This document shows positions 8,117 through 24,353 of a stretch of DNA of 64,000 bases, in pieces. The translations under genes and the position numbers were made by a program. This stretch comes from Pseudomonas aeruginosa PAO1 (lineage in GTDB: Bacteria > Pseudomonadota > Gammaproteobacteria > Pseudomonadales > Pseudomonadaceae), in the NCBI RefSeq assembly GCF_000006765.1, contig NC_002516.2; one strand, 5' to 3'. The notes below the pieces were generated by a model. That model saw only the letters and a program-made list of their open reading frames with translations. It made no database searches and was not told where the DNA came from. Each line of letters starts with the position of its first letter. The stretch's first letter is position 1.

Positions 8117-9337
8117 TCAGAAGTAGTAGCCGATGTTCAGGTTGGTGCGGAATATCCACTCGTTGCTGCGCGACGAACTGGTGCTGCTGAAGCCCGTGCC
8201 GCTCTCGGCACCGCCGTAGGGATTGGCGTTGCGTCCCCAGGTGAAGTCCAGCCAGCCCATGATCGGCAAGGCGAAGAACTGCACCCCTGCGGTATACATC
8301 TGCGAGTCGTCCCAGCCGGCCTTGTCCTTGAACATGCGGCTGTAGTCGTTGTAGAAGCGCAGCTTCTTCAGCATGCCCAGGTTCGGCGTCGGCACGTCGT
8401 AGGCGACGTTGAAGGACGCCACCGAGGCCCTGGCGGCCATCAGGTAGGCCGGGGTCAGGCCGTTGGTACCCATGAGTACCACGTCGTCGCTGACGCCCGC
8501 CGGGTTCTTCGGATCGAAAGCGTAGCGAATGGCTTCGCCGCTGAACGTCCAGTTGCCGGCGTTGAGCACGCCATGCAACCCCGCCGCCCAGTAGCGGCCA
8601 TCGTCCCTGGTGGTCGCGTTGTACAGGCGCGAGGCCGCCAGCGACGCGCCCAACTCGCTTTTCCAGCCATCTCCGGCGAGATTACGGGCGACCCGCAGGT
8701 TGAGCTGGTCACGTTTCTCGTTGTCCTGCCGCGAATGAATCGCCGCGACCGCGTTGTCGTCCAGGTCGGCATAACGGCCGACTTCCGGCGAATAGCGCAC
8801 ACCGCCCGGCAGCATCCGTGGGAAATAGCCGGCCTGGACATGCCAGTCGGCGTCCTTGTAGACGTACTTGGCGCCGCTGCCGGCGCTGACCCCGTAGCCC
8901 AGGAAGAACGGGATGTGGTAGCTCCAGCCGAACTGCGGATAGGGCTCCAGGCCGAACGGCTTGAACGGCGCGCCCAATTGCAGGCTGGATAGGTCGCTGA
9001 AGCGATAGCCGACGAAGCCGCGGTCGATGGCCCGCTTGCCGTCGTCCTGGAACCAGTAGCCGAGGTCGGAAAAGAAGTCCTCGTGGGTTGCCTGGATATC
9101 CAGGCGGAAGGTATCGAACAGCAGGCGGCCATTGTTTTCCGTGCTCTTCCAGTGTTCGTCGCGGTAGTTCACCCGCAGCGCGCCGCCGATATCCAGGCTG
9201 CTGCGCCCGTCGTCGCTGCGCAGGCCGACATGCGGGAAAGGCTTGCCGGTCTTCGACGCCTCGGACGGCGGCGAAGCGGCCAGGGCCGAAAGACTGGAAA
9301 GAAGAAGTACGGGGAACAGCGGATGGGTTTTCATCAT
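8117..9337 (-). CDS. Putative outer-membrane beta-barrel channel (porin)
   Basis: Signal peptide (LFPVLLLSSLSALA-AS), amphipathic beta-strands and C-terminal beta-signal NLNIGYYF. Confidence 0.75.
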   Translation of the reverse strand: MMKTHPLFPVLLLSSLSALAASPPSEASKTGKPFPHVGLRSDDGRSSLDIGGALRVNYRDEHWKSTENNGRLLFDTFRLDIQATHEDFFSDLGYWFQDDGKRAIDRGFVGYRFSDLSSLQLGAPFKPFGLEPYPQFGWSYHIPFFLGYGVSAGSGAKYVYKDADWHVQAGYFPRMLPGGVRYSPEVGRYADLDDNAVAAIHSRQDNEKRDQLNLRVARNLAGDGWKSELGASLAASRLYNATTRDDGRYWAAGLHGVLNAGNWTFSGEAIRYAFDPKNPAGVSDDVVLMGTNGLTPAYLMAARASVASFNVAYDVPTPNLGMLKKLRFYNDYSRMFKDKAGWDDSQMYTAGVQFFALPIMGWLDFTWGRNANPYGGAESGTGFSSTSSSRSNEWIFRTNLNIGYYF

Positions 9338-9532
9338 GACCTCGTCTGCGAGTGCGCCAGGGCAGCGTTTTTTCGAGCAAGCCGAACCCCTTCGGCGAAC
9401 TTCGCCGACAGCGCGGGTGGCCTTGGATAGTTGGTTTCCGGTTGCTCTTGTTTTTTATTTTTCCCGGCCGGCGGAACGGCCTCGGTTGTGTTATCGCTCC
9501 GCACTTCGTTTCATATGCGGCACAACGTTTCG

Positions 9533-9548
9533 AGCATTAACCATGCCA
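9533..9548 (-). promoter_or_regulatory. Putative sigma54 promoter for the porin gene
   Basis: Minus strand reads TGGCATGGTTAATGCT, with GG and GC at the invariant -24/-12 spacing. Confidence 0.6.
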
Positions 9549-9750
9549 GTGCAAGAACAATCCACTAAAACAAAAAAATCCTTTAAATACAGTTGTTTAT
9601 ATATTAAACACGCAACTTCTTTTCACCCTCGAAACAGGCTCTTGGCAAGGTAACGAAAACGCCCGAAGCGGGTGCGTAGAAAGATCACGGTGACACTTTT
9701 CGTCCCCCCCGGAACGCTATTCCAGCCTTGGCCGGGCTCGATCCCCAGGC

Positions 9751-9778
9751 AAAAAAAACCGGCGTTACAAACGCCGGT
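9751..9778 (-). terminator. Intrinsic terminator ending the 17-gene catabolic operon
   Basis: ACCGGCGTT-3 nt loop-AACGCCGGT with an 8-nt U tract on the minus strand. Confidence 0.85.
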
Positions 9779-9806
9779 CCAAAGGCAATGCGGGAATAAC
9801 CGGGGA

Positions 9807-10763
9807 TCAGAGGTCGAGCACCAGGCGCGATCCCTTGCAGCCGGACACGCAGACCATCATGGTCTGGTTGGCGATCTTTTCCGCCTTGGTCAGGACGCCG
9901 TCGCGATGCTCCGGCTCGCCTTCCAGCACACGGGTCTCGCAGGAACCGCAAACGCCCTCGCGGCAACTGCAATCGACCGCCACGCCAGCTTCCAGCAGGG
10001 CGTCGAGCAACGACTTGCCGCTCGGCACCTCGATGCTCGTGCCGCTGCGCGCCAGGCGCACTTCGTAGCTGCCCTGGGGCGCCGCCGGGGCCTGGGGCGC
10101 GGCGGCGAAGCGCTCGATGTGCACATGCGGATGGCCGAGGCGTTCGCAGTGCGTCTCGAAGGCATCGATCATCGGGGTCGGCCCGCAACAGTAGAAATGC
10201 GCGGTGGACGCCCGTGCGCCAAGGAAGGCGCCGAGATCCATGGGGCCGCCCTTCTCGTCATCGAAATGCAGCTGGATAGCGGCATCGCTGGCGGCCAGTT
10301 CTTCGACGAAGGCGGCTTCCTGGCGCGAGCGCGCGCAGTAGAGCAGTTCCACCGAACGTCCCAGCGCACGCAGGCGGTTGAACATGCAGTAGATCGGCGT
10401 CACGCCGATGCCACCGGCCACCAGTACGCTGTGCGCAGCGTTTTCCTCCAGCGGGAACAGGTTGCGCGGCCGGGATATCTGCAATTGCATGCCGACCCGC
10501 AGGCTATCGTGGACGAACGCGGAGCCGCCGCGGCTGCCGCGATCACGCAGGATGCCGAGCACATAGCGGCCGCAGTCCTCCGGCGAGTTGAGCAGCGAGT
10601 AGCTGCGCACCAGGCCGTTGGGCAGGTGCAGGTCGATATGCGCGCCAGCGCTGAATGGCGGAAAGACCTGGTCGCCCTGCGGGCGCAGTTCGACGCCGAG
10701 GATACCCTGCGCCTCGAAGCGCAGGGTATGGACGAAGGCCGCCAGTCTGTTGTCGTGAGTCAT
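9807..10763 (-). CDS. PDR/VanB-family oxygenase reductase (FMN, NAD(P)H, 2Fe-2S)
   Basis: Motifs RSYSL, GGIGVTP, YCCGPTPM and C-terminal CSCREGVCGSC...C. Confidence 0.92.
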   Translation of the reverse strand: MTHDNRLAAFVHTLRFEAQGILGVELRPQGDQVFPPFSAGAHIDLHLPNGLVRSYSLLNSPEDCGRYVLGILRDRGSRGGSAFVHDSLRVGMQLQISRPRNLFPLEENAAHSVLVAGGIGVTPIYCMFNRLRALGRSVELLYCARSRQEAAFVEELAASDAAIQLHFDDEKGGPMDLGAFLGARASTAHFYCCGPTPMIDAFETHCERLGHPHVHIERFAAAPQAPAAPQGSYEVRLARSGTSIEVPSGKSLLDALLEAGVAVDCSCREGVCGSCETRVLEGEPEHRDGVLTKAEKIANQTMMVCVSGCKGSRLVLDL

Positions 10764-10777
10764 CTTCTACCTCGCTT

Positions 10778-11212
10778 TCAGGCTTCGTCGCAGTTCGCCA
10801 GGTCGATATCGAGGCGCGCCCAGGCGTCGATCTCCACCAGCAGTTCGGGAAACACCAGGCCGCTCACTTCGACCAGGGTGGAGGCGGGAAAAGTGCCCTG
10901 GCCGGCGAAGAACTCCTGCCGCGCGCGCCCAATAGCGTCCTTGTCGGCGATGCGGGTGACGTAGACGTTGAGCTTGTAGAGGTTGCCGACATGGCCTCCC
11001 GCCGCCTCCAGCAGCGCCTTCACCTTGCCCAGCACCACCAGGGCCTGGGCATGGGCGTCGAGCGCGGCGCCGCGCTCGGCGGCCTGGCGGGTGGCCGGGT
11101 GCGCGGTCATGCCGGACATCACCAGCTCCTCTCCCACCAGCAGGGCATTGGACCAGCTTGCATCCGGCAGGTCGGGTAGCGCCGCGGCGCGGATCCGGCG
11201 CACCGCGGTCAC
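10778..11212 (-). CDS. RidA/YjgF family protein
   Basis: GTG start overlaps the Rieske gene stop. Motifs KLNVYVT, PASTLVEVSGL and LVEIDA. Confidence 0.88.
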   Translation of the reverse strand: MTAVRRIRAAALPDLPDASWSNALLVGEELVMSGMTAHPATRQAAERGAALDAHAQALVVLGKVKALLEAAGGHVGNLYKLNVYVTRIADKDAIGRARQEFFAGQGTFPASTLVEVSGLVFPELLVEIDAWARLDIDLANCDEA

Positions 11213-12228
11213 AGTTGCCGGGCCTCGATCAGTTCCAGCTGGGCCTTGGCCAGGTTCTTCAGGTGCCGCCGCAGGCGCACCAGGCCGAGGTCGTGCTGGT
11301 AGAGGTTCTCCCGCTGGTTGGCGTCCGGCTCCATGAATTCGAGCATTTCCCGGTCCTGCTCCAGCACCGCCCAGTGACGCGCCTCCAGGCGGTTCCTGTA
11401 GAGGAAGCGCCAGGTGTCACGCTGCCAGCCGGTGAGCGGCCGGCAACGCCAGTGGAACACCGCGCAGAGGTCGCGGGCGATCGGCGTGTAGCTGCCGACG
11501 ATATGGAAGTTGCCACCCGGGCCGCCGGTCTTCGGATAGGGAATCTCCAGGCGCATCCAGTGCATCCCGGTGTCGGCCCATTCGGTCCAGTCGAAGTTGA
11601 CCCCGCGCTGGCCGTCCTTCTCGAAGATGAAACCGGTGTCGGTGTCGCGGGTGACGAAGCGTGCCTGGCTTTCGCCCTCGGACATGGAGTGCGACTGCTT
11701 GTGCAGGTAGGTGCCGTGCATGGGGTCCATGACGTTGTCCAGCACGTAGCGGTAGTCGCCGCGCCACTCGGTATAGCAGAGGAAGTGGGAAAACTCGGGG
11801 TCGGTCAGTTGCTCGGGCAGCACCAGCGGCGGGGCTTCCTCGACATTGCCCGCCGAGTTGTACAGCCACACGGCGCCGGCCGCCTCGGTGATGTGGAAGA
11901 AGCGCGTGGCCTGGCTGCCTTCCAGCTTGCAGCCGGGGCTGCCGGGCACGCGGGCGGTAACGCCGTCGCAGCGCACTTCCACGCCGTGGTAGGGGCATTG
12001 CAGGCGGTCGCCCAGGTTCACCCCGCGCGACAGCGGCGCGCCACGGTGCGGGCAATGGTCTTCGAGGGCATGCAGGGTGCCGTCGGTATCGCGCCAGACG
12101 GCCAGCTTGTAGCCCAGGCGGCGCAGGGACACCGGCTTGTCCTCGATGAAGCCCACCGGGCAGATCGGGTACCAGAGGTTCTTCAGGCCGTTGGCGAGAA
12201 GCTGTTCAACAGGGTCCACGGTGCTCAT
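11209..12228 (-). CDS. Rieske non-heme iron oxygenase alpha subunit (VanA-like; no beta subunit)
   Basis: Rieske motif CPHRG...CPYHG, mononuclear Fe motif NVMDPMHGTYLH, and distal EQD. Confidence 0.93.
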   Translation of the reverse strand: MSTVDPVEQLLANGLKNLWYPICPVGFIEDKPVSLRRLGYKLAVWRDTDGTLHALEDHCPHRGAPLSRGVNLGDRLQCPYHGVEVRCDGVTARVPGSPGCKLEGSQATRFFHITEAAGAVWLYNSAGNVEEAPPLVLPEQLTDPEFSHFLCYTEWRGDYRYVLDNVMDPMHGTYLHKQSHSMSEGESQARFVTRDTDTGFIFEKDGQRGVNFDWTEWADTGMHWMRLEIPYPKTGGPGGNFHIVGSYTPIARDLCAVFHWRCRPLTGWQRDTWRFLYRNRLEARHWAVLEQDREMLEFMEPDANQRENLYQHDLGLVRLRRHLKNLAKAQLELIEARQL

Positions 12229-12250
12229 AGCGGTTTCCTCTCGGGGGAAT

Positions 12251-12469
12251 TCACGCGCCCAGGCGGGCCATCAGGGTCTTGTAGGCTTCCTCGGTCCAGG
12301 GACCGCCGCCCGGGCAGGTCGGGCCAGCCTGGTTGAGGTAGCCGAGCAGCCCCGGCAGGTCGTGCAGGCCGGCGGCGTAGGCGCGCTCGATGGAATCGCC
12401 GAGCAGGTCTTCGAAGGCGTTCGGCTCGCGGGTACGGGCCTGATGGGGTTCGAGGTAACGGTCTTGCAT
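12251..12469 (-). CDS. Small conserved protein (72 aa), recombinase-like HTH fold
   Basis: ATG lies 2 nt after the upstream stop and codon usage is operon-like. The fold assignment is from recall. Confidence 0.7.
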   Translation of the reverse strand: MQDRYLEPHQARTREPNAFEDLLGDSIERAYAAGLHDLPGLLGYLNQAGPTCPGGGPWTEEAYKTLMARLGA

Positions 12470-12470
12470 G

Positions 12471-12788
12471 TCATTGGCCTCCAGTGCGGACCCGTTCGCG
12501 GATGGTTTCGCGAACCGGGACGAAGTCGTAGGTCGGGTAGCATTCGGTGCGGAACACGCCCCAGGCGGAGCGCTCCAGTTCGACGTTGACGCGTGGCAGC
12601 AGGGCCGGCGGCAGGCGCAGGGTGACGATCTGGCCGAGGCCCATGGCGACGGTCCAGGAAACGATCTCCACGCCCTCTCCCGGAAAGCGCTCCCACCAGT
12701 CCATGGCCTTCATGCGGGCCTGGATCTCGTCGAGATTCTTCGACTGGTCGTGCCGGAGCAGCACGGTCAGCAACAAGGTGTCGCTCAT
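12471..12788 (-). CDS. Small conserved hypothetical protein (105 aa)
   Basis: GAG SD precedes ATG 12788 (MSDTLLLTVLLRHDQSK). Tight operon spacing on both sides. Confidence 0.75.
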   Translation of the reverse strand: MSDTLLLTVLLRHDQSKNLDEIQARMKAMDWWERFPGEGVEIVSWTVAMGLGQIVTLRLPPALLPRVNVELERSAWGVFRTECYPTYDFVPVRETIRERVRTGGQ

Positions 12789-12795
12789 GCTCGTC

Positions 12796-13760
12796 TCAAC
12801 TCCTGGGTTTGTCGGTGAGGAACCGGCCCTGCGGTGCCTCGACGCTTTTCTGTCGCCGGGTATTGCCGTCCAGGCCACCGGCGATGGCCCATTCGGCGAA
12901 CACCGTAGGGCCAGGTTCGAACTCGCGGGCCTGCCACTCGCCGGTCAGTTGGTCCTCGTCGGCGTAGTACTCGACGAGGGCGCCGGCGGGGTTCCGGAAG
13001 TACCAGAAGTACGCCGAGGACACCGGATGCCGACCCGGGCCGATCTCGGTATCCCAGCCGCAGCGGGCGATGTGCATGCCGCCGCCGAACACCTCATGGA
13101 TATCGCGCACGGTGAACGCCACGTGGTTCAGGCCGGCGCGCGGTTGCGGCAGTTGCAGCATGAACAGGTCGTGGTGGCCGCCCTCCTCCGCGCAACGCAG
13201 GAAGGCGCCGCGATTCGGATAGCGATCGGAGCAGACGAAGCCGAAGCGCTCGCGGTAGAAGCGTTCGCAGGCGTTGACGTCCTTGACGAAGAACACCACG
13301 TGGCCGACTTCGACGGGCTGCGCACGCTCGTAGATGGGGCTGGCCTGGTTGATCCGGCCCTTGAACTGCCAGGTGTTGGACTGGCCGCAGGCCACCTGGA
13401 TGTCGCGTTTACGGGTGACTTGCAGGCGCACGGCCAGACCGTTCGGGTCGGTGCAGCCGATACGGCCCTCGCCCTCGATGAAGCCGGGATCATTGGCGAT
13501 GCGCTCGGGTACCGCTTGAGGTCCGCCTCGCTCTCCACACCCCAGACCACTTCACGCAGGGTCGAGCCTTCCTCGATGGCCGGCGGCAGGCCCGGCTTGT
13601 CCCGCGCCGCGACTATCACGCGGCAGCCGTTGAGGCTTTCGAAGACCACCTGGTCCTCGCTCGCCTCGACCTGCGCCAGGCCCCAGTCGGCGAAGAAACG
13701 CGCGCTGGTGGCCAGGTCTTCCACGCCGTAGGTGATTTCGTCGATTCCCGATACGCTCAT
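12796..13760 (-). pseudogene. Two-domain VOC (type I extradiol) ring-cleavage dioxygenase with a -1 frameshift at 13508/13509
   Basis: The N-half ORF (13128..13760) and C-half ORF (12796..13431) are in different frames. Restoring one base gives ...DLKRY-A-ERIANDPGFIEGEGRIGCTDPNGLAVRLQV..., 321 aa. The C-domain has VGH, LNH and GRHPVSSAYFWYFRNPAGALVEY. Confidence 0.85.
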
Positions 13761-13773
13761 CGCGTCTTCCTCA

Positions 13774-15258: not shown

Positions 15259-15269
15259 GGTAGTCGTCC

Positions 15270-16073: not shown

Positions 16074-16083
16074 GGCGAGAGCC

Positions 16084-17766
16084 TCAAGCGGTGGCCTTGT
16101 CGGTCTTGGCATCGTTGGTCGGCGGGCCGGCGAAAATGCTCTTGAAGCTGCCCACCGCGAGCATGTCCACCTCCAGCAGGAAGGGACCTGGCTCGGCCAG
16201 GGCGCCATCGAGCACGGCGCTGAAATCCTTCAGATCGCTGACCTTGGCATGACGCAGGCCGAGGGAAGCCGACAGTTGGGCATAGTCCGGGGTGTGCAGG
16301 TCGACGTAGCAGCGGCGGCCACCGTAGGCGGCGTCCTGGATGTTCTTGATCACCCCGTAGCCCTGGTCGTTCATCAGCACGATGAGCATGTCGGCCCGCT
16401 CCTGCACGGCGGTGGCCAGTTCGCCCAGGTTGAGGATGAAGCCGCCGTCGCCGGCGAGCACGAAGGTCTTGCGCCCAGGCGCGGTTTCCGCCGCGCCGAC
16501 CGCCGCGCCGATGCCCATGGCCAGGCCCTGGCCGATGCCACCGCCGAGGGCGTGGACGCCGGCGCGGGGGCTGAAGATATTCAGGTGGCGGTTGCCCCAG
16601 GTGCTGTTGGAGACGGTGACGTCGCGCACCCAGTTGAAATTGCGGCCGGCCAGCGCCTGCAGTTGCTCCACCAGCGAAGCGTAGGGGCCAAGGCCGTCCA
16701 CCAACTGGGCGCGGGCCTGGTTGCGCGCGGCGGCGAGATCCGCGGCGAAGGCCGGGTCCACCGACAGGCGCCCTTCCAGGCGGTCGGCGAGCCCCTTGAG
16801 GACCCGTTCGGAATCGCCGCAGACGAAGAAATCGCTGGGGTAGCAGCGGCCCTCCGCCGTGGCATCGGCGTCTGCCCGGTAAAGCGGACGCGGGAGCTTG
16901 AGTTCGTACTTGAGGGTTTCGTTGCCGCGCAGGCGCGAGCCCACCACGAGCATGGCGTCGCAGCTCTGGTAGAACCGCTCCACCGGTTTATTCAGGTTGA
17001 AGGCGCCGAGGGAACGCGCGTCGTCTTCCGGGACGATGCCACGCCCCTGGGTGCTGGTGACCACGCCCACGCCCATGGCCAGCAGGCGTTGTACCTGCGG
17101 GCCGGCATGCCGGGCACCGCCCCCCAGCCAGAGCATCGGTCGCCGCGCCTGGGCGAAACGCTCGGCTAGGTCGTCCAAGGCTTGCTCGGAGGGCCTGGCC
17201 ACCGGCACCGGCAGCGGCGACAGGTCGGCCGGCAGGTTGATCAGCGCCGACTGGATATCGATCGGGATTTCCACGCTCACCGGGCCGGCGGGCGCGGTCA
17301 GGGCGGTTTGCACGGCCAGCTTGAGGGTGCTGATGGCGGTGTCGACGCTGCGCACGCGGAAGGCCGCCTTGGAGATGGCCTTGAGCATGCTCAACTGGTC
17401 CGGCGCCTCGTGGATGTAGGCGAGGCTCCGATCCAGGTAGGGGGTTTCGATCTGCCCGGTCAGGTGCAGCAGCGGGGTGCCGGCAGTGAGCGCCTCGACC
17501 AGCGCCCCGGCAGCGTTGCCGGCGGCGGTTCCGGTGCTGGTCAGGCACACGCCCAGGCCACCGCTGGTGCGGGCGTAGGCATCGGCCATGTTGGCCGCCC
17601 CGGCCTCGCCGCGGGCCATCACGAAACGGATGTTGCCGCGGCTGGCGAAGGCATCGAGGATCGGCATGTTGTGGATCGAGATCACCCCGAAGGCGGCCTT
17701 CACCTCGCACTGTTCGAGGAAGGCGGCGATGGCGGCGCCGACGGTGACTTGGCTTGCGTTACGCAT
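16084..17766 (-). CDS. Thiamine-diphosphate-dependent enzyme (decarboxylase or acetolactate-synthase-like)
   Basis: ARGEAGAANMADAYAR (catalytic Glu) and ThDP motif GDGG...NDQGYG. Confidence 0.9.
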   Translation of the reverse strand: MRNASQVTVGAAIAAFLEQCEVKAAFGVISIHNMPILDAFASRGNIRFVMARGEAGAANMADAYARTSGGLGVCLTSTGTAAGNAAGALVEALTAGTPLLHLTGQIETPYLDRSLAYIHEAPDQLSMLKAISKAAFRVRSVDTAISTLKLAVQTALTAPAGPVSVEIPIDIQSALINLPADLSPLPVPVARPSEQALDDLAERFAQARRPMLWLGGGARHAGPQVQRLLAMGVGVVTSTQGRGIVPEDDARSLGAFNLNKPVERFYQSCDAMLVVGSRLRGNETLKYELKLPRPLYRADADATAEGRCYPSDFFVCGDSERVLKGLADRLEGRLSVDPAFAADLAAARNQARAQLVDGLGPYASLVEQLQALAGRNFNWVRDVTVSNSTWGNRHLNIFSPRAGVHALGGGIGQGLAMGIGAAVGAAETAPGRKTFVLAGDGGFILNLGELATAVQERADMLIVLMNDQGYGVIKNIQDAAYGGRRCYVDLHTPDYAQLSASLGLRHAKVSDLKDFSAVLDGALAEPGPFLLEVDMLAVGSFKSIFAGPPTNDAKTDKATA

Positions 17767-18556
17767 GACGGGACAACCCTCCGGAAACGTCGATATGACT
17801 GCCCGTCGTATAGGCAGACAGGGGAGATGCGAGGAACAGGATGGCGCGGGCCGCCTCGATCGGCTTGCCCAGGCGTCCCAGGGGAATCTGCTTGTTCCGC
17901 GCCAGCTGCGCGGTCCATTGCGCCCAGTCCAGCTCGCGCTCTTCGCGGGCTTCGAAACGGCGCCGCCACTGGCCGGACTCGACCAGGCCGATGAGGATGC
18001 CGTTGACCCGTACGCCCTTAGGCGCGAACTCGAAGGCCATGGAGCGCACCAGGTTCTTCACCCCGGCGCGGGCCGCGCTGGTAGCCACCATGTGCGGCTC
18101 CGGCTGGCTGGCCAGCAGCGAGTTGACGCAGACGATGGCCGCGTCGGCGCGGCTTTCCAGTTGCGGCAGGAAAGCGCGTACCGGGTGGATGACGGAAAAG
18201 AACTTCAGTTGCAGTTCCTCGCTCCAGGCCTCGTCCGTGGTCTCGGCGAAGGTCGAGACGCGGCCCTGGCCGGCGTTGTTCACCAGGATGCTGGCGCACC
18301 CCAGCGTTCTCTCGCAGGCTTCGGCGAAGGCGCGCACCTGCAACGCATCCAGCACGTCGCAGACACTGGCGAACAGGCGCGCCCCGGGGAAGCGCTGGCG
18401 TAGCGCGGACTCGGCGGCACGCAGGCGCTCGCCGTCGCGAGCGCAGAAAGCCACGGCGGCGCCTGCCTCCAGCAGCAGTTCCACCGTGGCCAGGCCGATC
18501 CCGGAGGAACCGCCGGTGACCACCGCCACCGCCTCGGACAGGTCATACGGTTTCAT
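17759..18556 (-). CDS. SDR oxidoreductase with an atypical active site
   Basis: TGGSSGIG and NNAG are present. The usual YxxxK position reads HMVATSAAR. Confidence 0.88.
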   Translation of the reverse strand: MKPYDLSEAVAVVTGGSSGIGLATVELLLEAGAAVAFCARDGERLRAAESALRQRFPGARLFASVCDVLDALQVRAFAEACERTLGCASILVNNAGQGRVSTFAETTDEAWSEELQLKFFSVIHPVRAFLPQLESRADAAIVCVNSLLASQPEPHMVATSAARAGVKNLVRSMAFEFAPKGVRVNGILIGLVESGQWRRRFEAREERELDWAQWTAQLARNKQIPLGRLGKPIEAARAILFLASPLSAYTTGSHIDVSGGLSRHA

Positions 18557-19376
18557 GCGGGCGACTCCGGAAGATCGGGGTGACGTTGTCCTGGCCGTCG
18601 GCGCGGTAGTCGAGCAGGTACGACAGCTCGTCGGCGCTGCTGCGCACCCGGCTGACCAGTCCCTCGATGCGTTCCGGGTCGATATGCCCGGCGGCGATGG
18701 TCGCCCCCATCGCCGCGATGACGCGACCGCTGTGATCACGTACCGGCGCCGCGACGGTGGAGATGCTCGCCTCGAAGAACCCCTCGCCCTGGACGAAGCC
18801 ACGCTGGCGGTCGCCCTGGACCATGTCGAAGAGTTCCAGCACGCTGCGCGGGGTGTTCGGCGAGAACTGCTCCAGCTGCTCCTCCGGGTACAGCTCGCGC
18901 AGCTCGCCCAGGCTCAGGTCCTGCAGCAGGATGCGGCCGAGCACCGTGGCGTGGGCCGGCAACCGGGTCCCGACGTTCACCGAGCTGCTCAGCGGGGTGG
19001 ACGGCGAAACCTTGGCCACGTAGACGATCGAACGGCCGTCGCGCACCACCAGGTTGCAGGGGTAGCGGATCTCGTCGCACAGGCGGTTCAGCAGCGGCTG
19101 GCCGAGTTCGGTCAGCTCCAGCGAGGCCAGGTACTCGAAGCCCAGGCGCAACACCGCCATGCCCAGGCGGTACTCGTTGCCGTTGCGGGTGACGAAGCCC
19201 ATGGCCTCCAGGGTGGTCAGCAGGCGGAAGATGGTCGAGCGCGGCAGCTTCAGGCGCCGCGCCAACTCCGGCGCCGTCAGGGTACGGTCCTTCCGGCTGA
19301 ACTCGCAGAGCAGCAGCAGGCCGCGTTCGAGGCCAGGCACGATGTACTTGTCTTGCGAATCGTCTGACTTATCCAT
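18543..19376 (-). CDS. IclR-family transcriptional regulator
   Basis: HTH segment GLERG...ELARRLKLPRSTIFRLLTTL, plus PAHATVLGRILL and VAAPV. Confidence 0.93.
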   Translation of the reverse strand: MDKSDDSQDKYIVPGLERGLLLLCEFSRKDRTLTAPELARRLKLPRSTIFRLLTTLEAMGFVTRNGNEYRLGMAVLRLGFEYLASLELTELGQPLLNRLCDEIRYPCNLVVRDGRSIVYVAKVSPSTPLSSSVNVGTRLPAHATVLGRILLQDLSLGELRELYPEEQLEQFSPNTPRSVLELFDMVQGDRQRGFVQGEGFFEASISTVAAPVRDHSGRVIAAMGATIAAGHIDPERIEGLVSRVRSSADELSYLLDYRADGQDNVTPIFRSRPHETV

Positions 19377-20238
19377 TGGCGGTTCCTTCAAGAGAGAGGC
19401 GTTGCGCGTGGCCGATGCGTCCTGCGACCACTTCGGGTTGTTCGATCGGGCTGGCGTGGCCGGCCCCGGGAATCGACGAGAACGACGCGCCGAGCTGGCG
19501 GGCGATGGCGCCGCAACTCTCGGGCGTGGTGATGCCGTCGTCCTCGCCGCAATGCACCTCGCAAGGAGCGGCAGGCTGCCCGTTGCCCAGCAGGTCGTCG
19601 CCGCAGAGCAGCTCGACGGCCTGGCGGTAGCCCTCGGGGTTGAGCCGCGCCATGTTCCAGCGCACCCAGGCCAGGGCCTCCTCGCTGGGGTTGCGGCCGA
19701 GCAGGCGCGCGGTGCGCTCGCTGGCCATGCCGTCGATACCGAAGCGCTCCAGGTTCTCCAGGCGCTGGCGGCGCACCTGGGCGCCGCTGTCGCGCAGCTC
19801 GGCGGCGCCGTAGCCGCGCGCCGGGCTGAGCAGCACCAGGCGGCGCACCCGCGCCGCGCCGATGCCGGCGGCGTAGGCCGTGGCCATCAGCGCGCCGAGG
19901 GAGTGGCCCACCAGCAGGCAGCTCTCCACGCCCAGCGCATCCAGCAGCAGCTCCAGGCACGCGGCGTAGTCGCAGGCCTTGGGCCGGGCCGGCGGCAGCG
20001 GCGTGGACAGGCCGTAACCCGGCGCGTCCCAGGCGATCACCCGATTGCCGGCGGCCAGGCGCTGGGCGCAATGCAGCCAGGACGCCGAGCCCGAACCGAT
20101 GCCGTGCAACAGCACCACCACCGGGCCCTGGCCGCATTCGCGGATGGCCAGCTGGGCGCCGTCGGCCAGTTGCACCAGCCGCTCGGGAAAGCGCTGTTGC
20201 AGGTTCGGGACGGGGGTGTGGGTCTGCGCCATGTTCAT
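19369..20238 (-). CDS. Alpha/beta hydrolase
   Basis: Motifs LHGIG, WDAPGYG, nucleophile GHSLG and GAGH. Confidence 0.9.
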   Translation of the reverse strand: MNMAQTHTPVPNLQQRFPERLVQLADGAQLAIRECGQGPVVVLLHGIGSGSASWLHCAQRLAAGNRVIAWDAPGYGLSTPLPPARPKACDYAACLELLLDALGVESCLLVGHSLGALMATAYAAGIGAARVRRLVLLSPARGYGAAELRDSGAQVRRQRLENLERFGIDGMASERTARLLGRNPSEEALAWVRWNMARLNPEGYRQAVELLCGDDLLGNGQPAAPCEVHCGEDDGITTPESCGAIARQLGASFSSIPGAGHASPIEQPEVVAGRIGHAQRLSLEGTANG

Positions 20239-20246
20239 CGGCGGCC

Positions 20247-20777
20247 TCAGCGCTTGATGCTCGCCAGAGGGTGCTCCGGCGGGTAGGTCGGGGTGATCGG
20301 CTTCTTCGCACCGAGCATCACGCACATCAGCGCATCCTCGTCGCCGATGTTGATCTCCTCGCGGTACACGCCCGGCGGCACGGAAATCACGTCGCGGTCG
20401 GTGAGGATGGTCTCGAAGCGCTCGCCGTCCTTCTCCAGCACCACCTTGAGCTTGCCTCGCAGGACGAAGAACACTTCCTCGACGTCGATGTGCAGGTGCG
20501 GCGGGCCTTCGTGACCCGCCGGGATGACCATGGTGGAAAAGGTGAAGTGCTCGGACGGAATGGTGTTCATGTCACTGGCCACACCGGTGCCGCCGGTGCC
20601 GATGTAGCGCATCTGCGCGCGGCGGAACCTGGGGTCGTAGTCGGCCTGGAACTTCAGCGCGTTCCAGTCGTACTTGCGGGTGGAGTAACGGGCGATGCGG
20701 GTGTTGCACCACTCCTCGAAGCTGGCGCCTTCGGGGCGGTCCCAGGATTTCGGGGCGTTCTGGTTCAGATCGGTCAT
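20247..20777 (-). CDS. Cupin-domain protein
   Basis: GGAGG SD before ATG 20777. Metal motif PPHLH..VEEVFFVLRG and ISVPPGVYR. Confidence 0.88.
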   Translation of the reverse strand: MTDLNQNAPKSWDRPEGASFEEWCNTRIARYSTRKYDWNALKFQADYDPRFRRAQMRYIGTGGTGVASDMNTIPSEHFTFSTMVIPAGHEGPPHLHIDVEEVFFVLRGKLKVVLEKDGERFETILTDRDVISVPPGVYREEINIGDEDALMCVMLGAKKPITPTYPPEHPLASIKR

Positions 20778-20790
20778 GGAGTCCTCCGGA

Positions 20791-21552
20791 TCAGGGCATG
20801 ACGAACCCGCCGTTGACCGGCAAGGTTTGTCCAGTGATGAAGCGGGAAAGGTCGGAAAGGGCGAACAGCACCGCGCCGCAGACATCCGCCGGCTGTTGGC
20901 CGCGCTGGAGCGCGCGCTGCTCGCGGTAGAGCCGGTGGCGGGCGGCCGGCACGTACTCGGTGGCCTCGACCTCCACCAGTCCGGGAGCGATGGCGTTGAC
21001 GGTGATGCCGTCGCCGCCCAGCTCGCGGGCCAGGCTGCGGGTCATGGCGATCAGCGCGCCCTTGCTGGCGCTGTAGGCGAGCAGGTTGGGCGCGCCCCAC
21101 AGCGGGGTGTCGGAGGCCAGGTTGACCACCGCGCCACGTCCGGACTCGCGCAGCGCCGGCAGGCAGGCACGGGTCATCAGCCAGGTGCCGCGCACGTTGA
21201 CCTGGAGCACCCGGTCGAACACCTCGATCTCCAGTTCTTCGCAGCTCTTGCCGCCGGAGTTGGTGATGGAGGCGTTGTTCACCAGGCCGTCGAGACCGCC
21301 CAGGCGCTCGACCGCCGCGGCCACGCAGCGCTCGATCGAAACCGGGTCGGCCAGGTCCAGTGGCAGGCCGCTGATATCCAGGCCCTGCTCGGCGAGTTCA
21401 CGGGCGGAGCGCTGCACGCGTTCCTCCAGGATGTCGGCGATCACCACCCGGGCGCCGGCGCGTGCCGCCGCTTCGGCGAAGGCGTAGCCGAGGCCGCGGG
21501 CGCCGCCGGTGAGGAGCACGCGGCGACCGTCGAGAAGAGAGTTCTGGCTCAT
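20791..21552 (-). CDS. Classical SDR oxidoreductase
   Basis: Motifs TGGARGLG, NNAS, YSASK and NAIAPG. Confidence 0.9.
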   Translation of the reverse strand: MSQNSLLDGRRVLLTGGARGLGYAFAEAAARAGARVVIADILEERVQRSARELAEQGLDISGLPLDLADPVSIERCVAAAVERLGGLDGLVNNASITNSGGKSCEELEIEVFDRVLQVNVRGTWLMTRACLPALRESGRGAVVNLASDTPLWGAPNLLAYSASKGALIAMTRSLARELGGDGITVNAIAPGLVEVEATEYVPAARHRLYREQRALQRGQQPADVCGAVLFALSDLSRFITGQTLPVNGGFVMP

Positions 21553-21557
21553 GGCGT

Positions 21558-22334
21558 TCACACCGTGCCCAGGTTGGCTTTCGGCAGGTAATGCAGGACG
21601 CGCTTCTCGGCCCAGACCACCGCGCCATAGGCGAGCACGCCGATCAGGGTGAGCATGACGATGGCGACGAACACCCCGGCGGTGTTGCCCTGCCCTTCGG
21701 CATCCACCAGCAGGAAGCCGAGGCCCTTGTTGCCGCCCACCAGCTCGCCGACGGTGACGCCGATCACCGCCAGGGTGGAGGCGATGCGCAGGCCGGAGAA
21801 CAGCGCGGCCATCGCCGAGGGGAACTCCACCAGGCGGAAGATCTGCCAACGGCTGGCGCTCATCGCGCGCACCAGGTTGATCATGTCCGGGTCGACGGTG
21901 CGGATGGCCGAGAGCACGTTGATCATCACCGGGAAGAACACGATCAGCACGGCGATGAGGATCTTCGGGTACACCGTATAGCCCAGCCACATCACGAACA
22001 GCGGGGCGAAGGCCACCTTCGGCGCGATCTGCAGCGCCAGGATGTAGGGCGAGAGCATGGCCTCGGTGGTCGGCGACAGGCCGAGGGCAACGCCGATGCT
22101 CACGCCAAGCAGCGCGCCCAGGGCGAAACCGACGACGATCTCCAGGCTGGTGATCGCCGTGTGCTCCAGCAGTCCGGCGCCGTGCCACATGGCCACGCCC
22201 TCCGCCGCCACCCGGCTCAGCCCCGGCAGGACGAACTCGGGCATGCCGAGCAGGCCGGGCCCCCACTGCCAGGCAGCGAGGAACAGGAACAACAGCGCGA
22301 GACTGCCGAGCAAGGGTCTGGTGGAGAGGTTCAT
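21558..22334 (-). CDS. ABC transporter permease (NitT/TauT type)
   Basis: Hydrophobic, with APKVAFAPLFVMWLG and an EAA-like loop. Confidence 0.92.
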   Translation of the reverse strand: MNLSTRPLLGSLALLFLFLAAWQWGPGLLGMPEFVLPGLSRVAAEGVAMWHGAGLLEHTAITSLEIVVGFALGALLGVSIGVALGLSPTTEAMLSPYILALQIAPKVAFAPLFVMWLGYTVYPKILIAVLIVFFPVMINVLSAIRTVDPDMINLVRAMSASRWQIFRLVEFPSAMAALFSGLRIASTLAVIGVTVGELVGGNKGLGFLLVDAEGQGNTAGVFVAIVMLTLIGVLAYGAVVWAEKRVLHYLPKANLGTV

Positions 22335-23338
22335 GGGCGGGCTCCGTGCTGCGCGGTCAGGTCGGCGGACTCGACGAAACGGTTGGTGTAAAGCTCGTCC
22401 AGCGGCGTCTCGCGGCCGACGATGCCTTCGCTGACGTAGAACCTGCGAACCTTGTCCAGGCGCTGCGGATCGATGTGCCCGAGCGGCTGCTGGTTGGCGT
22501 AGACGTGCTCGACATAGAGCCGCAGGACCCGTTCCAGGCTGGCCTCGCGGCCCTTGTAGGCGGGCACCGCGGCAGCGAAGGTGGCGGCGGCCTGCCTTGG
22601 GTCGGCGATGATGTCGCGCATGCCCATGAGGGTCGCCCTGACCACCCCGCCGACCACCTCAGGCTGCTTCTCGATGGCCTCGTCCGAGGCGAGGATCGCC
22701 TGGGCCATGCTCTCGAACACCTCGCTGCCCGGCAGCAACTTCACCTGCCGGCCGGCATCCTCGGCACTCACCACCCAGTCCGGCACGCCGGCCATGGCCT
22801 GCGAGCGGCCGGCGGAGAACAGTTGCCAGACGCCGGATGGGCCGGCCGCCTGGATGTCCACGTCGGACTTGCCCAGGCCAGCCTTGCGCATCGACGCCAG
22901 CAGGGCGTAGTAGGTGGTGTCGGAGTAGGACATCACGGTCAGGGTCTTGCCCTTGAGGTCCTTGACGCTGTCGATACCGGCCGTGCCATCGGTGGCGATC
23001 ATGGTCACCCCGCCGGCACCGAGCACCGCCACGGCTTTCACCGGGATGCCGTTGGCGCGCACCACGATCGGCGTATCGCCGATGGCGCCGCCGACCGGTG
23101 CGTTGCCGGCGCCGATCTGCTTGGCCACGTCGACCCCGCCCTTGCCGGCGACGAAGGTCACCTTCAGGCCCAGGTCGGCGTAGTAGCCCTTCTCCCGGGC
23201 GATCACCCAGGGTGCGAAGGCCGGCGAGTTCGGCGGTGCCGGCAGCAGGTAGGTGACTTCCCGCGGGGCGGCCTGGACGGTCAGGCCGGCGGCGAACAAC
23301 GCGCCGCACAATGCGGCGTTGAGCAATGACTTGGACAT
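22331..23338 (-). CDS. ABC substrate-binding protein (NMT1/THI5-like)
   Basis: Signal peptide (…LTVQA-AP). Motifs EKGYYADLG and DLKGKT. Confidence 0.88.
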   Translation of the reverse strand: MSKSLLNAALCGALFAAGLTVQAAPREVTYLLPAPPNSPAFAPWVIAREKGYYADLGLKVTFVAGKGGVDVAKQIGAGNAPVGGAIGDTPIVVRANGIPVKAVAVLGAGGVTMIATDGTAGIDSVKDLKGKTLTVMSYSDTTYYALLASMRKAGLGKSDVDIQAAGPSGVWQLFSAGRSQAMAGVPDWVVSAEDAGRQVKLLPGSEVFESMAQAILASDEAIEKQPEVVGGVVRATLMGMRDIIADPRQAAATFAAAVPAYKGREASLERVLRLYVEHVYANQQPLGHIDPQRLDKVRRFYVSEGIVGRETPLDELYTNRFVESADLTAQHGARP

Positions 23339-23378
23339 CAGCGGCTCCTGTAACGGAATTCGGATCGGCAGGCGGCGA

Positions 23379-24230
23379 TCAGTGCAGCTCGGCGCTCTCG
23401 CCCACTTTCAGCAGGGTCATCAGGCGCCCGACCAGCGGCCCGATCTCCGGCAGCTTGCGGCGCTCCAGCGGGTTGTCGCGCAGCGGCAGGCCGACCTCGA
23501 TCTCCTCGACGATGGTGCCCGGCCGCGCGCTCATCACCAGGATGCGATCGGACATGGCGATCGCCTCGACCAGGTCGTGGGTAATGAACAGCGCGGTCTT
23601 GCGTTGCTCGCAGAGCATCCGCGCCAGGTCCTGCTGGAGGATCATCTTGGTCTGCGCGTCGAGGGCCGAGAACGGCTCGTCGAGGAACAGCACCTGCGGG
23701 TCGGTGGCCAGGGTTCGGGCCAGGGCGGCGCGTTGGCGCATGCCGCCGGAAAGCTGGAACGGATAGTGCTCGGCGAAACCGGCGAGGTGACACTTCTCCA
23801 GCATTTCCTCGGCGATGGCGCGCCGTTCGCCGGCCGCGCGACCGTCGATCTCCAGGCCCAGCTCGATGTTGCGGCGAATGCTGCGCCAGGGCATCAGCAG
23901 GTCCTTCTGCAACATGAAGGAGACCTTGCGTACCGGACCGCTGACCCGCTCGCCGCCGACCCGCACCTCGCCTTCGCTGGGTGCGTAGAGACCCGCCCCC
24001 ATGTTCAGCAGGGTGCTCTTGCCGCAACCGGACGGCCCGATGATGGACACCACCTCGCCGCGGCGGATGGCCAGGTCGAGCCCCTGCACCGCGAGGGTCG
24101 CCGCGCTTTTGCCGCGGCCCGGAAAATGCTTGGCGACGCCGCGGAATTCGATTTCGAGACGGCTATCCGCAGGAGCGGCTACAGGTAGCGAATGCTCGGA
24201 AGTGAGGATGCTCAACGACGTCGCTCTCAT
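23379..24230 (-). CDS. ABC ATP-binding protein (NitT/TauT type)
   Basis: Walker A GPSGCGKS, LSGGM, and DEPFSALD. Confidence 0.95.
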   Translation of the reverse strand: MRATSLSILTSEHSLPVAAPADSRLEIEFRGVAKHFPGRGKSAATLAVQGLDLAIRRGEVVSIIGPSGCGKSTLLNMGAGLYAPSEGEVRVGGERVSGPVRKVSFMLQKDLLMPWRSIRRNIELGLEIDGRAAGERRAIAEEMLEKCHLAGFAEHYPFQLSGGMRQRAALARTLATDPQVLFLDEPFSALDAQTKMILQQDLARMLCEQRKTALFITHDLVEAIAMSDRILVMSARPGTIVEEIEVGLPLRDNPLERRKLPEIGPLVGRLMTLLKVGESAELH

Positions 24231-24251
24231 CTGGACTAAGCCTCTTGTCTT

Positions 24252-24286
24252 GTTTTATATATGAAACATCGTTTTAAATATAAAAC
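24252..24286. promoter_or_regulatory. Tandem AT-rich palindromes; candidate IclR operator
   Basis: GTTTTATATATGAAAC (24252-24267) and GTTTTAAATATAAAAC (24271-24286) lie over the predicted transcription start. Confidence 0.5.
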
Positions 24287-24287
24287 T

Positions 24288-24303
24288 TGCAGAAGCCATG
24301 CCA
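24288..24303 (-). promoter_or_regulatory. Putative sigma54 promoter of the 17-gene operon
   Basis: Minus strand reads TGGCATGGCTTCTGCA, matching TGGCAC-N5-TTGCW with exact GG/GC spacing. Confidence 0.7.
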
Positions 24304-24353
24304 GATGAAAGTTCACCGGCGAAACAGCCTTGTTCCGAGTATTAAACTTTTAA

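Follow-up and report, generated by a model that had tools for sequence, protein, structure and literature searches.

The PA3497-PA3514 genes of Pseudomonas aeruginosa PAO1: a widely conserved catabolic system, tentatively for kynurenate

What compound do the genes PA3497 to PA3514 of Pseudomonas aeruginosa PAO1 serve to degrade, and do they form a single system at all? These 18 minus-strand genes occupy positions 8117 to 24230 of a 64,000-nucleotide (nt) stretch of contig NC_002516.2 (referred to here as the window), and the original prediction, made from the sequence alone, took them for a complete and apparently uncharacterised catabolic system, possibly for a nitrogen-containing aromatic compound or heterocycle. 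Here, we identified the gene products by Pfam and NCBIfam profile searches and compared the locus with its orthologues. The comparison provides strong evidence that the 18 genes constitute one co-conserved catabolic pathway. Its substrate would be a bicyclic N-heteroaromatic carboxylate, most likely kynurenate (4-hydroxyquinoline-2-carboxylate) degraded via the “quinoline pathway,” an assignment that we offer tentatively and with somewhat less than even confidence. All 18 genes were present at the predicted positions in the high-GC DNA of the window, as follows.

23379-24230, minus strand: ABC transporter ATPase (PA3514), gene 1 of the operon; PF00005
22331-23338, minus strand: periplasmic binding protein of the NMT1/SsuA family (PA3513); PF09084 (5e-30), TIGR01728 under cut-off
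21558-22334, minus strand: ABC permease (PA3512); PF00528, 4-nt overlap with the binding-protein gene
20791-21552, minus strand: short-chain dehydrogenase/reductase 1 (SDR1; PA3511); adh_short_C2 (1e-60)
20247-20777, minus strand: monocupin (PA3510); Cupin_2, His-His-Glu metal motif read from the sequence
19369-20238, minus strand: alpha/beta hydrolase (PA3509); Abhydrolase_6/1
18543-19376, minus strand: IclR-family regulator (PA3508), inside the operon; HTH_IclR and IclR_C
17759-18556, minus strand: SDR2 (PA3507); NF005468 (458 bits)
16084-17766, minus strand: thiamine diphosphate (ThDP)-dependent enzyme (PA3506); three TPP domains, NF005470 (928 bits)
15270-16073, minus strand: L-aspartate dehydrogenase (AspDH; PA3505); NF009827 equivalog, PF03447 and PF01958
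13774-15258, minus strand: aldehyde dehydrogenase (ALDH; PA3504), GTG start; PF00171 (4e-167)
12796-13760, minus strand: two-domain VOC extradiol dioxygenase, frameshifted here and a pseudogene in this lineage; open reading frames (ORFs) 13760-13128 and 13431-12796
12471-12788, minus strand: 105-amino-acid (aa) protein (PA3502); no Pfam or NCBIfam match
12251-12469, minus strand: 72-aa HTH_62 protein (PA3501); PF20552 (2e-31)
11209-12228, minus strand: alpha-only Rieske non-haem iron oxygenase (PA3500); PF00355 Rieske and PF19112 VanA_C
10778-11212, minus strand: Rid-family protein (PA3499); 100% identical to PDB 2IG8
9807-10763, minus strand: PDR/VanB-type reductase (PA3498); Fer2, NAD_binding_1, DmmA-like_N
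9756-9780, minus strand: intrinsic terminator of the 17-gene operon; 11-bp stem, 6 G-C pairs, T-run
8117-9337, minus strand: 406-aa outer-membrane channel (PA3497); signal peptide, C-terminal ...GYYF

Seventeen of the genes (24230-9807) follow one another with spacings of -14 to +40 nt, five gene pairs overlapping, and end at a single hairpin (9780-9756), beyond which the channel gene starts after a gap of 469 nt from the last operon gene. This confirms the predicted arrangement of 17 coupled genes, one terminator, and then an outer-membrane gene. The ATPase gene is also operon gene 1 in three other species, where its upstream neighbours are unrelated. Of the two small proteins first listed as unknown, the 105-aa one indeed has no family, whereas the 72-aa one belongs to PF20552. 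Exact matches to the proteins tested were found on at least 1000 contigs each, all from P. aeruginosa or close relatives.

In a scan that took one genome for each species, relatives of the Rieske oxygenase turned up in at least 588 GTDB species. When the window proteins were used as tblastn queries, nearly all of the best 80 loci carried a co-linear set at 45 to 98% identity, comprising cupin, hydrolase, IclR, SDR2, ThDP enzyme, AspDH, ALDH, dioxygenase, HTH_62 protein, Rieske oxygenase, and reductase. (In the table of these loci, the 105-aa and Rid genes seem to be lacking from many loci as an artefact of the threshold, and the gene caller, based on GC content at third codon positions, was too noisy for short genes in high-GC loci.) Twelve functions recur jointly, namely, HTH_62, Rieske oxygenase, an electron-transfer partner, two SDRs, VOC dioxygenase, cupin, hydrolase, ThDP enzyme, AspDH, ALDH, and IclR, in loci of Pseudomonas, Variovorax, Herbaspirillum, Pigmentiphaga, Caballeronia, and Cupriavidus and in records of Acinetobacter baumannii and Klebsiella pneumoniae; gene order and transporters vary among these clusters. 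The ThDP enzyme and ALDH always travel together, and AspDH is always present.

A second group of Rieske proteins, 50 to 54% identical to that of PAO1, occurs in A. baumannii, Klebsiella, Cupriavidus, Burkholderia, Caballeronia, Novosphingobium, and Streptomyces records, and three loci of this group were inspected (A. baumannii, K. pneumoniae, and a Cupriavidus pauculus plasmid). In A. baumannii (CP035931.1), the order (with percent identity to PAO1) is IclR, a Rieske-type ferredoxin, HTH_62, Rieske oxygenase (53%) directly followed by SDR1 (58%), dioxygenase (51%), a flavin adenine dinucleotide (FAD) reductase, an MFS transporter, cupin (67%), hydrolase (40%), SDR2 (56%), AspDH (40%), ALDH (59%), ThDP enzyme (45%), and, closing the cluster, the outer-membrane channel orthologue (46%). 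The K. pneumoniae record (NZ_CP129771.1) and the C. pauculus plasmid contain the same enzymes in other orders, with MFS or TctC transporters. In Klebsiella, the Rieske gene is followed by an SDR1 orthologue, IclR, and then the VOC dioxygenase, and in Cupriavidus an SDR gene comes directly after the Rieske gene. In Acinetobacter and Klebsiella, the oxygenase belongs to a three-component system, in which a Rieske-type ferredoxin and an FAD reductase stand in for the PDR reductase. Because the set is kept through rearrangement, a swap of the electron partner, and a swap of transporters, we read it as a single pathway; the single catabolic system originally proposed is thus borne out by co-conservation across Pseudomonas, Burkholderiales, Acinetobacter, and Klebsiella loci.

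The claim that the system is complete does not hold for PAO1, in which the dioxygenase is frameshifted. Its two ORFs (13760-13128 and 13431-12796) lie in different, overlapping frames, and alignment with five orthologous loci reveals a one-base deletion near 13509, the sole indel in the alignment. An intact 321-aa dioxygenase is found on at least 1000 contigs and the truncated C-terminal ORF of PAO1 on 37; most strains, like every relative examined, have an intact gene. The frameshift is therefore restricted to a minority lineage, presumably a PAO1-like one. Because the dioxygenase is frameshifted, the pathway would be blocked at the extradiol step in PAO1, and the standard laboratory strain is probably a natural mutant of the pathway. 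The broken copy may explain how the system escaped phenotypic screens, and the frameshift is also the probable origin of the operon boundary that seems to lie between PA3503 and PA3504. In an intact orthologue, TIGR02295 and TIGR03211 align across both VOC domains (each under its cut-off), and candidate metal-ligand motifs (VGHVVF, NHVAF, and LVEYY, with His, His, and Glu) could be read from the sequence as aligned to PDB 3B59.

A 2025 preprint describes PA3504 to PA3514 as one operon, and another report (PMC12771364, 2025) refers to PA3498 to PA3503 and PA3504 to PA3514 as “two contiguous uncharacterized operons,” absent or rare in many isolates. Each exact PAO1 protein is nevertheless carried by at least 1000 public contigs, and the region is probably a common presence/absence polymorphism and not a rarity of PAO1.

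The operon and the channel gene appear to be controlled in common through the following elements.

24289-24304, minus strand: sigma54-type -24/-12 element, promoter of the operon; TGGCAT-N5-CTGCA
24252-24286, unstranded: tandem palindrome, two copies of GTTTCATATATAAAAC, directly downstream of the operon -12 element; candidate IclR operator
9534-9609, minus strand: control region of the channel gene; palindrome at 9594-9609, sigma54 -24/-12 element at 9534-9548

The -24/-12 element of the operon lies 60 to 75 nt upstream of the ATPase start, and TGGCAT-N5-(C/A)TGCA is invariant in four of four Pseudomonas-lineage species while the flanks of the alignment diverge; the comparison species (Metapseudomonas resinovorans, P. 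chlororaphis, and P. alkylphenolica) have different upstream genes. The element of the channel gene is present in 39 of 43 Pseudomonas-lineage loci. Both transcription units thus display GG-N10-GC at the correct spacing and kept across species, and the sigma54 promoters of the original prediction (24304-24289 and 9548-9534) stand. The 16-nt AT-rich palindrome GTTTCATATATAAAAC was found at three distinct positions in the 64-kb window, against 0.03 expected; the third copy (9594-9609) has three mismatches and lies upstream of the -24 element of the channel gene. The motif is also found in the three other species of the promoter alignment. We infer that it is the operator of the embedded IclR repressor and, because it is read as a common operator, that the operon and the channel gene make up one regulon. 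The regulator itself contains both domains of its family (PF09339, 2e-13; PF01614, 5e-32) and is closest to the PcaR/PcaU/PobR subfamily (175 bits, under cut-off); its probable sites of repression are the palindromes, which overlap the sigma54 promoter. Pfam found no gene for an AAA+ sigma54 activator among the 18 genes, and an enhancer-binding activator could be encoded elsewhere, a global one, for example.

It is unusual to find a repressor of this type paired with a sigma54 promoter, over whose start site the candidate operator is placed. Within the 513 nt between the operon and its upstream neighbours (24230-24743) there is also a terminator-like hairpin on the minus strand (24490-24475), which presumably terminates the co-directional PA3515 to PA3517; two of the upstream ORFs (484 and 477 aa) we take to be the PA3516 and PA3517 lyases. 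A very AT-rich stretch (24260-24400) between this hairpin and the sigma54 element is a possible enhancer or site for a DNA-bending protein.

Which reaction the Rieske oxygenase catalyzes bears directly on the substrate. Its Rieske motif (C59-P-H61...C78-P-Y-H81) and mononuclear-iron motif (D-N-V-M-D-P-M-H171-G-T-Y-L-H176) are invariant in 15 orthologues. Its homologues number more than 2000, and the 120 best are 71 to 94% identical and come mainly from Pseudomonas and Burkholderiales; the nearest solved structures, by comparison, are DdmC (the best), SxtT, and CarAa, at E values of 1e-21 or weaker. Profile searches found no NTF2-like gene for a beta subunit among the 18 genes. An alpha-only Rieske/VanA_C protein with an FNR-like/[2Fe-2S] reductase recalls the class IA systems (phthalate dioxygenase, VanAB, DdmABC, and TsaMB), and the PDR/VanB-type reductase PA3498 is the predicted electron donor to the oxygenase. 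The cluster departs from class IA in the remoteness of its Rieske protein from solved members (1e-21 at best), in the HTH_62 gene that precedes the Rieske gene, and in the Rieske-type ferredoxin and FAD reductase used by clusters of other genera. In all of the loci that were annotated and examined (Variovorax, Paraburkholderia, Hydrogenophaga, Pigmentiphaga, Burkholderia, Acinetobacter, Klebsiella, and Cupriavidus), the HTH_62 gene immediately precedes the Rieske gene, and the HTH_62 protein is a possible accessory subunit of the oxygenase.

An SDR gene and an extradiol gene following a Rieske gene are the signature of dihydroxylation, diol dehydrogenation, and meta-cleavage. Because an SDR gene comes directly next to the Rieske gene in three other genera and the extradiol gene is next or nearby, the gene context favors a ring dioxygenase over a dealkylase; of the two activities first proposed for it, hydroxylation or dealkylation, the former is retained and the latter disfavored.

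Two further genes of this part of the operon appear to contribute less. In the Rid protein, a Gly is aligned with Arg105 of E. coli YjgF (1QU9), the residue with which RidA binds the substrate carboxylate, so that the canonical arginine is absent; with 41 bits against a TIGR00004 cut-off of 106, the protein belongs to the Rid superfamily and is not RidA proper. Its structure (2IG8) is on record as “hypothetical protein PA3499,” and its distant PDB matches include a 2-aminomuconate deaminase (6IZH). The 105-aa protein was modeled with AlphaFold 2 (AF2; predicted local distance difference test score [pLDDT], 74) as a beta-alpha-beta-beta-alpha-beta, ferredoxin-like fold, for which Foldseek returned generic ferredoxin-like matches and no specific relative. 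Neither gene occurs in the clusters of Acinetobacter, Klebsiella, and Cupriavidus, and both proteins look like lineage-specific additions. Lacking Arg105 and missing in these three genera, the supposed RidA is weak evidence for imine chemistry, for which it had been cited.

For the remaining catabolic enzymes, searches of NCBIfam and of PDB sequences found no close characterised relative, with the exception of AspDH; PDB searches with the Rieske oxygenase, binding protein, ThDP enzyme, dioxygenase, cupin, hydrolase, and SDRs returned distant or generic relatives or uncharacterised PAO1 proteins only. SDR1 is proposed to be the cis-dihydrodiol dehydrogenase. SDR2, which matches PDB 3LF1/3LF2 (“Q9HYA2”) over its full length (2e-171), is a candidate reductase for an unsaturated 2-oxo-acid side chain. 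The best PDB match of the cupin is the quercetinase QueD, albeit a weak one, and we propose that it opens a pyridone ring as a dioxygenase; the alpha/beta hydrolase, distant from PcaD and from meta-cleavage product hydrolases, would act on an amide or a C-C bond. The ThDP enzyme belongs to the 2-oxo-acid decarboxylase/acetolactate-synthase superfamily, its nearest named subfamily being 5-guanidino-2-oxopentanoate decarboxylase (250 bits), and is likewise proposed to be a 2-oxo-acid decarboxylase. The predicted aspartate dehydrogenase homologue scores 481 bits against the NF009827 equivalog model (cut-off, 226) and has NAD_binding_3 and Asp_DH_C domains; we take PA3505 to be the L-AspDH already studied in PAO1. 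That enzyme was purified and characterised by Li et al. in 2011, as cited in PMC5554190, and crystal structures exist for PA3499 and PA3507. “Uncharacterised” is therefore too strong a word for the proteins, although it holds for the substrate, for which the full-text literature searched contained no assignment.

The transport genes are less informative. The names of 120 homologues of PA3513 are all generic, and the NMT1-type binder, once taken as a pointer to a pyrimidine-like ligand, says little on the ligand because other lineages use MFS or TctC transporters in place of the importer. For the same reason, catabolism of a sulfonate, taurine, or cysteate, which the SsuA/TauB-like transporter might have suggested, was dropped as a candidate; the cluster also has no desulfonating enzyme. 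The 406-aa channel protein had been called a porin. Besides its signal peptide, it ends in an aromatic residue, as is typical of outer-membrane barrels. It has no Pfam or NCBIfam match, so that membership of a porin family finds no support in its sequence, but the AF2 model (from 11 orthologues) shows about 17 long strands in antiparallel arrangement in addition to a signal helix; this is a low-confidence model (pLDDT, 58), and its best Foldseek matches (OprO, Vibrio OmpT, chitoporin, and OmpF/OmpC) reach template modeling scores of 0.40 to 0.52. A Porin_4 gene occupies the equivalent position in Burkholderiales clusters. It is reasonable to regard PA3497 as a porin-like substrate channel, and its co-conservation and the motifs that it has in common with the operon indicate that it belongs to the catabolic system.

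What, then, would be the substrate? The gene content, the operon, its conservation, the common promoter and operator motifs, and the frameshift provide firm ground; the substrate and all of the steps other than the reported AspDH activity are our proposal. A nitrogen-containing aromatic compound or heterocycle, as first suggested, is still the most economical reading. We further argue for a bicyclic one because of the dioxygenase triad, a second candidate ring-cleaving enzyme (the cupin) with SDR2, the ThDP/ALDH pair, and a genuine AspDH. These fit a scheme in which the benzene ring is opened first, the resulting 2-oxo-acid side chain is shortened by one carbon, and the nitrogen ring then yields an aspartate-type fragment. 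The known kynurenate route (KEGG map00380) passes through 7,8-dihydro-7,8-dihydroxykynurenate, 7,8-dihydroxykynurenate, oxopropenyl and oxopropyl intermediates, and 5-(2-carboxyethyl)-4,6-dihydroxypicolinate to amino acids. Its biochemistry dates from 1961 to 1963, when the intermediates were reportedly described in papers from the Hayaishi group, and its enzymes are EC 1.14.99.2, 1.3.1.18, and 1.13.11.10, followed by the formation of the picolinate. The enzyme inventory of the cluster fits these intermediates one for one, the number and kinds of its enzymes corresponding to a ring hydroxylase that uses NADH and O2 to form a dihydrodiol, a diol dehydrogenase, extradiol cleavage, reduction, and oxidative decarboxylation of a 2-oxo acid.

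According to this scheme, kynurenate would be taken up by the outer-membrane channel and the ABC importer and converted to its 7,8-cis-dihydrodiol by the Rieske oxygenase and PDR reductase, perhaps with the HTH_62 protein. SDR1 would re-aromatise the dihydrodiol to 7,8-dihydroxykynurenate, and the VOC dioxygenase would cut the 8,8a bond to give 5-(3-carboxy-3-oxopropenyl)-4,6-dihydroxypicolinate. SDR2 would then reduce the double bond of the side chain, the ThDP enzyme would decarboxylate the 2-oxo acid, and ALDH would oxidise the aldehyde to 5-(2-carboxyethyl)-4,6-dihydroxypicolinate; a reductase, a ThDP decarboxylase, and an ALDH are all needed because the 2-oxo-acid side chain is reduced and then oxidatively decarboxylated. 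The cupin, acting like Dke1 or quercetinase, might next use oxygen to cleave the pyridone at its beta-dicarbonyl, leaving an amide that the alpha/beta hydrolase might split to yield 2-oxoglutarate and aminofumarate/iminoaspartate. Finally, AspDH would reduce iminoaspartate to L-aspartate or equilibrate it with oxaloacetate and ammonia. The atoms balance in this respect: after cleavage of the lactam and of C4-C4a, C7-C6-C5-C4a-C8a makes up the skeleton of 2-oxoglutarate and N1-C2(COOH)-C3-C4 that of aspartate/iminoaspartate. Because the nitrogen ring of kynurenate would yield an (imino)aspartate skeleton, the presence of an AspDH in an aromatic operon would be explained.

Several other observations are consistent with kynurenate. 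The known pathway also ends in amino acids, and the host range of the cluster (pseudomonads, Burkholderia, and Acinetobacter) is compatible with it. The kinship of the IclR regulator to PcaR, PcaU, and PobR, which sense aromatic acids, is suggestive of an aromatic-acid substrate. Many Pseudomonas, Variovorax, and Herbaspirillum clusters, although not those of P. aeruginosa, include an additional gene:

L002 8156-9316, L020 8267-9415, L086 12023-13165, and L093 11561-12682 (locus number and coordinates in each): extra flavoprotein monooxygenase; FAD_binding_3

The closest solved relative of the L020 protein is 6-hydroxynicotinate 3-monooxygenase NicC (1e-81), followed by other decarboxylative hydroxylases, among them those of vanillate and 4-hydroxybenzoate. 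An accessory enzyme of this pyridine-carboxylate type in so many clusters would count in favor of kynurenate. It may admit a second, related substrate, and it could feed xanthurenate (8-hydroxykynurenate) into the pathway by 7-hydroxylation. Kynurenic acid is reported to support the growth of A. baumannii strains (Breisch 2022, cited in PMC10732645), and kynurenate breakdown by pseudomonads was reported to yield glutamate, alanine, and organic acids (Horibata 1961, cited in PMC11354673). The full-text literature searched contained no gene assignment for kynurenate catabolism. We therefore consider it possible, and hold yet more loosely than the substrate itself, that the cluster is the missing genetic basis of the quinoline pathway for kynurenate and xanthurenate, with two reactions that would be new to science (a monocupin opening a 4-hydroxy-2-pyridone ring oxygenolytically and an AspDH with the physiological role of capturing iminoaspartate derived from the ring) and with a new, small HTH_62 partner of the Rieske oxygenase, employed by pathogens to use a host metabolite.

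A number of points weigh against kynurenate, the first being that the assignment is based on matching enzyme classes to the known pathway. PA3500 is of the VanA/DdmC alpha-only type, the best-known members of which are monooxygenases or demethylases. SDR1 and SDR2 are generic FabG-like proteins and bear no specific likeness to known dihydrodiol dehydrogenases or ene-reductases, and neither the 105-aa protein nor the Rid protein has a part in the scheme. Minimal clusters in Burkholderia and Paraburkholderia (Rieske, Rid, reductase, and dioxygenase genes) are without an adjacent SDR1 and without ThDP enzyme, AspDH, and ALDH, and a Hydrogenophaga cluster likewise is without an adjacent SDR1 and the ThDP/AspDH/ALDH block; such clusters fit a monooxygenase role or reuse of the module for another substrate. 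In none of the annotated clusters did kynA, kynB, or an aminotransferase gene adjoin. A search with the Cupriavidus Rieske protein, aimed at the classical kynurenate degraders Delftia and Comamonas, gave mostly metagenome proteins among its best 120 matches and was uninformative about them. In A. baumannii, cluster and growth on kynurenate coincide only at the level of the species. Lastly, the reported end products are glutamate, alanine, and acetate, not aspartate, and the cupin, hydrolase, and AspDH steps of our scheme are our own proposal.

If kynurenate is not the substrate, the next best explanation is that one pathway degrades another N-aromatic acid, either of an aminobenzoate or aminophenol type or a monocyclic hydroxypyridine carboxylate, which we judge possible but on the unlikely side. 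The Rieske oxygenase would hydroxylate beside the nitrogen function, the VOC enzyme would cleave, and the Rid protein and AspDH would process the nitrogen-containing fragment. Rid-family 2-aminomuconate deaminases do exist, and 6IZH is among the distant matches of PA3499; however, this Rid protein lacks Arg105, and in Acinetobacter, Klebsiella, and Cupriavidus it is missing along with the 105-aa protein while the rest of the pathway is kept. The 2-aminophenol and 2-aminomuconate operons (amn and nba) similarly combine extradiol cleavage, an ALDH, and a Rid/YjgF protein. They differ in that the PAO1 dioxygenase is of VOC type I and not AmnAB, in that the Rid protein here has no canonical arginine and is dispensable elsewhere, and in that the tautomerase, hydratase, and aldolase genes of their lower pathway are absent from the PAO1 cluster. 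The NicC-like flavoprotein of many clusters, which would act on hydroxypyridine or hydroxybenzoate carboxylates, also suits such a substrate, and with the nicotinate (nic) and picolinate (pic) clusters the system has in common an alpha/beta hydrolase, a dedicated porin or porin-like channel, and, if our reading holds, an N-heteroaromatic carboxylate as substrate, in addition to this NicC-like enzyme in many orthologous clusters. Nothing in the PAO1 cluster, however, corresponds to the molybdenum hydroxylase, NicX-type dioxygenase, maleamate amidase, or isomerase of nic and pic; its own distinctive members are AspDH, a ThDP enzyme, and the dioxygenase triad for a benzene ring. A role of the substrate in supplying nitrogen would be compatible with AspDH and the sigma54 promoters, and the minimal clusters without SDR1 fit direct monooxygenation, but a monocycle has no obvious need for both a VOC enzyme and a cupin, two SDRs, and a ThDP decarboxylase with ALDH.

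An improbable explanation is that the single pathway serves a nitrogen-free aromatic acid, such as a methoxylated lignin or plant phenolic, with AspDH and Rid in side functions. A VanA-like Rieske enzyme would O-demethylate this substrate to a catechol for extradiol cleavage, as the VanA_C domain and the best solved relative, dicamba O-demethylase DdmC, might suggest. A LigXa-type Rieske gene adjoins the minimal clusters of Burkholderia and Paraburkholderia, the accessory flavoprotein is kin to decarboxylative vanillate and 4-hydroxybenzoate hydroxylases, and the IclR regulator is near PcaR and PobR, all of which would agree with a phenolic acid. Left unexplained are the SDR that follows the Rieske gene in three genera and the co-conservation of AspDH (40 to 88% identity from Pseudomonas to Acinetobacter, and annotated in Klebsiella too). 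It is very improbable that the locus consists of two adjacent, unrelated operons (PA3498 to PA3503 for the oxygenase and PA3504 to PA3514 for transport, dehydrogenase, and ThDP functions), as the listing in PMC12771364 and the oxygenase module found alone in some Burkholderia, Paraburkholderia, and Hydrogenophaga genomes might imply, given that only 13 nt, with no promoter or terminator motif found in them, separate the ALDH and dioxygenase genes, that the apparent break coincides with the frameshift of the PAO1 lineage, and that genes of both parts are interleaved in Acinetobacter, Klebsiella, Cupriavidus, and Caballeronia.

What is already known of this locus is an ordinary aromatic catabolic operon made from familiar superfamilies, catalogued in PAO1, with one enzyme and two structures reported; what is new is one deeply conserved pathway spanning three bacterial orders, common sigma54/operator control, and a concrete proposal for the substrate. 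In hosts, plants, and microbes, kynurenate is a plentiful product of tryptophan metabolism with signalling roles. If it is indeed the substrate, several orphan EC numbers would be filled and a 60-year-old gap in the kynurenate pathway closed, the “stand-alone” aspartate dehydrogenase of these bacteria would be accounted for, the structural-genomics structures 2IG8 and 3LF1 would be given a function, and a common presence/absence polymorphism of P. aeruginosa would be explained. Relatives of the Rieske oxygenase occur in at least 588 species, three major hospital pathogens are among the carriers of the gene set, and, should kynurenate be correct, P. aeruginosa, A. baumannii, and K. pneumoniae could consume an immunomodulatory metabolite of their host. 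Whatever the substrate, this is among the largest conserved catabolic operons of a model organism without an assigned function.

Some minor observations concern the neighbourhood of the clusters and the records that contain them. Genes beyond the channel gene were rejected as members of the system, since they differ between groups: an alanine symporter, an asparaginase, AraC, and a deacetylase in the P. fluorescens group and EamA, an Asp/Arg hydroxylase, and a pyridoxal phosphate enzyme in the P. putida group. On the C. pauculus plasmid (L091 27998-28972 and L092 11203-13810), a [2Fe-2S] and MoCo molybdopterin hydroxylase pair lies beside the cluster with its own IclR and TctC genes; it could feed the pathway as an N-heterocycle hydroxylase (for a quinaldate-type substrate, for example), but it is bordered by an integrase gene, was seen once, and was not used as evidence. 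Several PLSDB “plasmid” records with the cluster are 0.7 to 5 Mb in size, carry the housekeeping genes speA, metK, and gshB, and look like misfiled chromosomes. Two records, filed under the names of an actinobacterium (Gordonia sp. IEGM753) and an enterobacterium (Pantoea sp. Ap-967), display a P. putida/fluorescens-like gene order, 77 to 78% Rieske identity, and a Pseudomonas-type channel gene and are probably mislabelled or contaminated assemblies. In PAO1 itself, the flanking ORFs of the window, which we take to be rnf, nth, the PA3516 and PA3517 lyases, mexPQ, argG, bfrB, and algD, agree with the PA3490 to PA3543 region.

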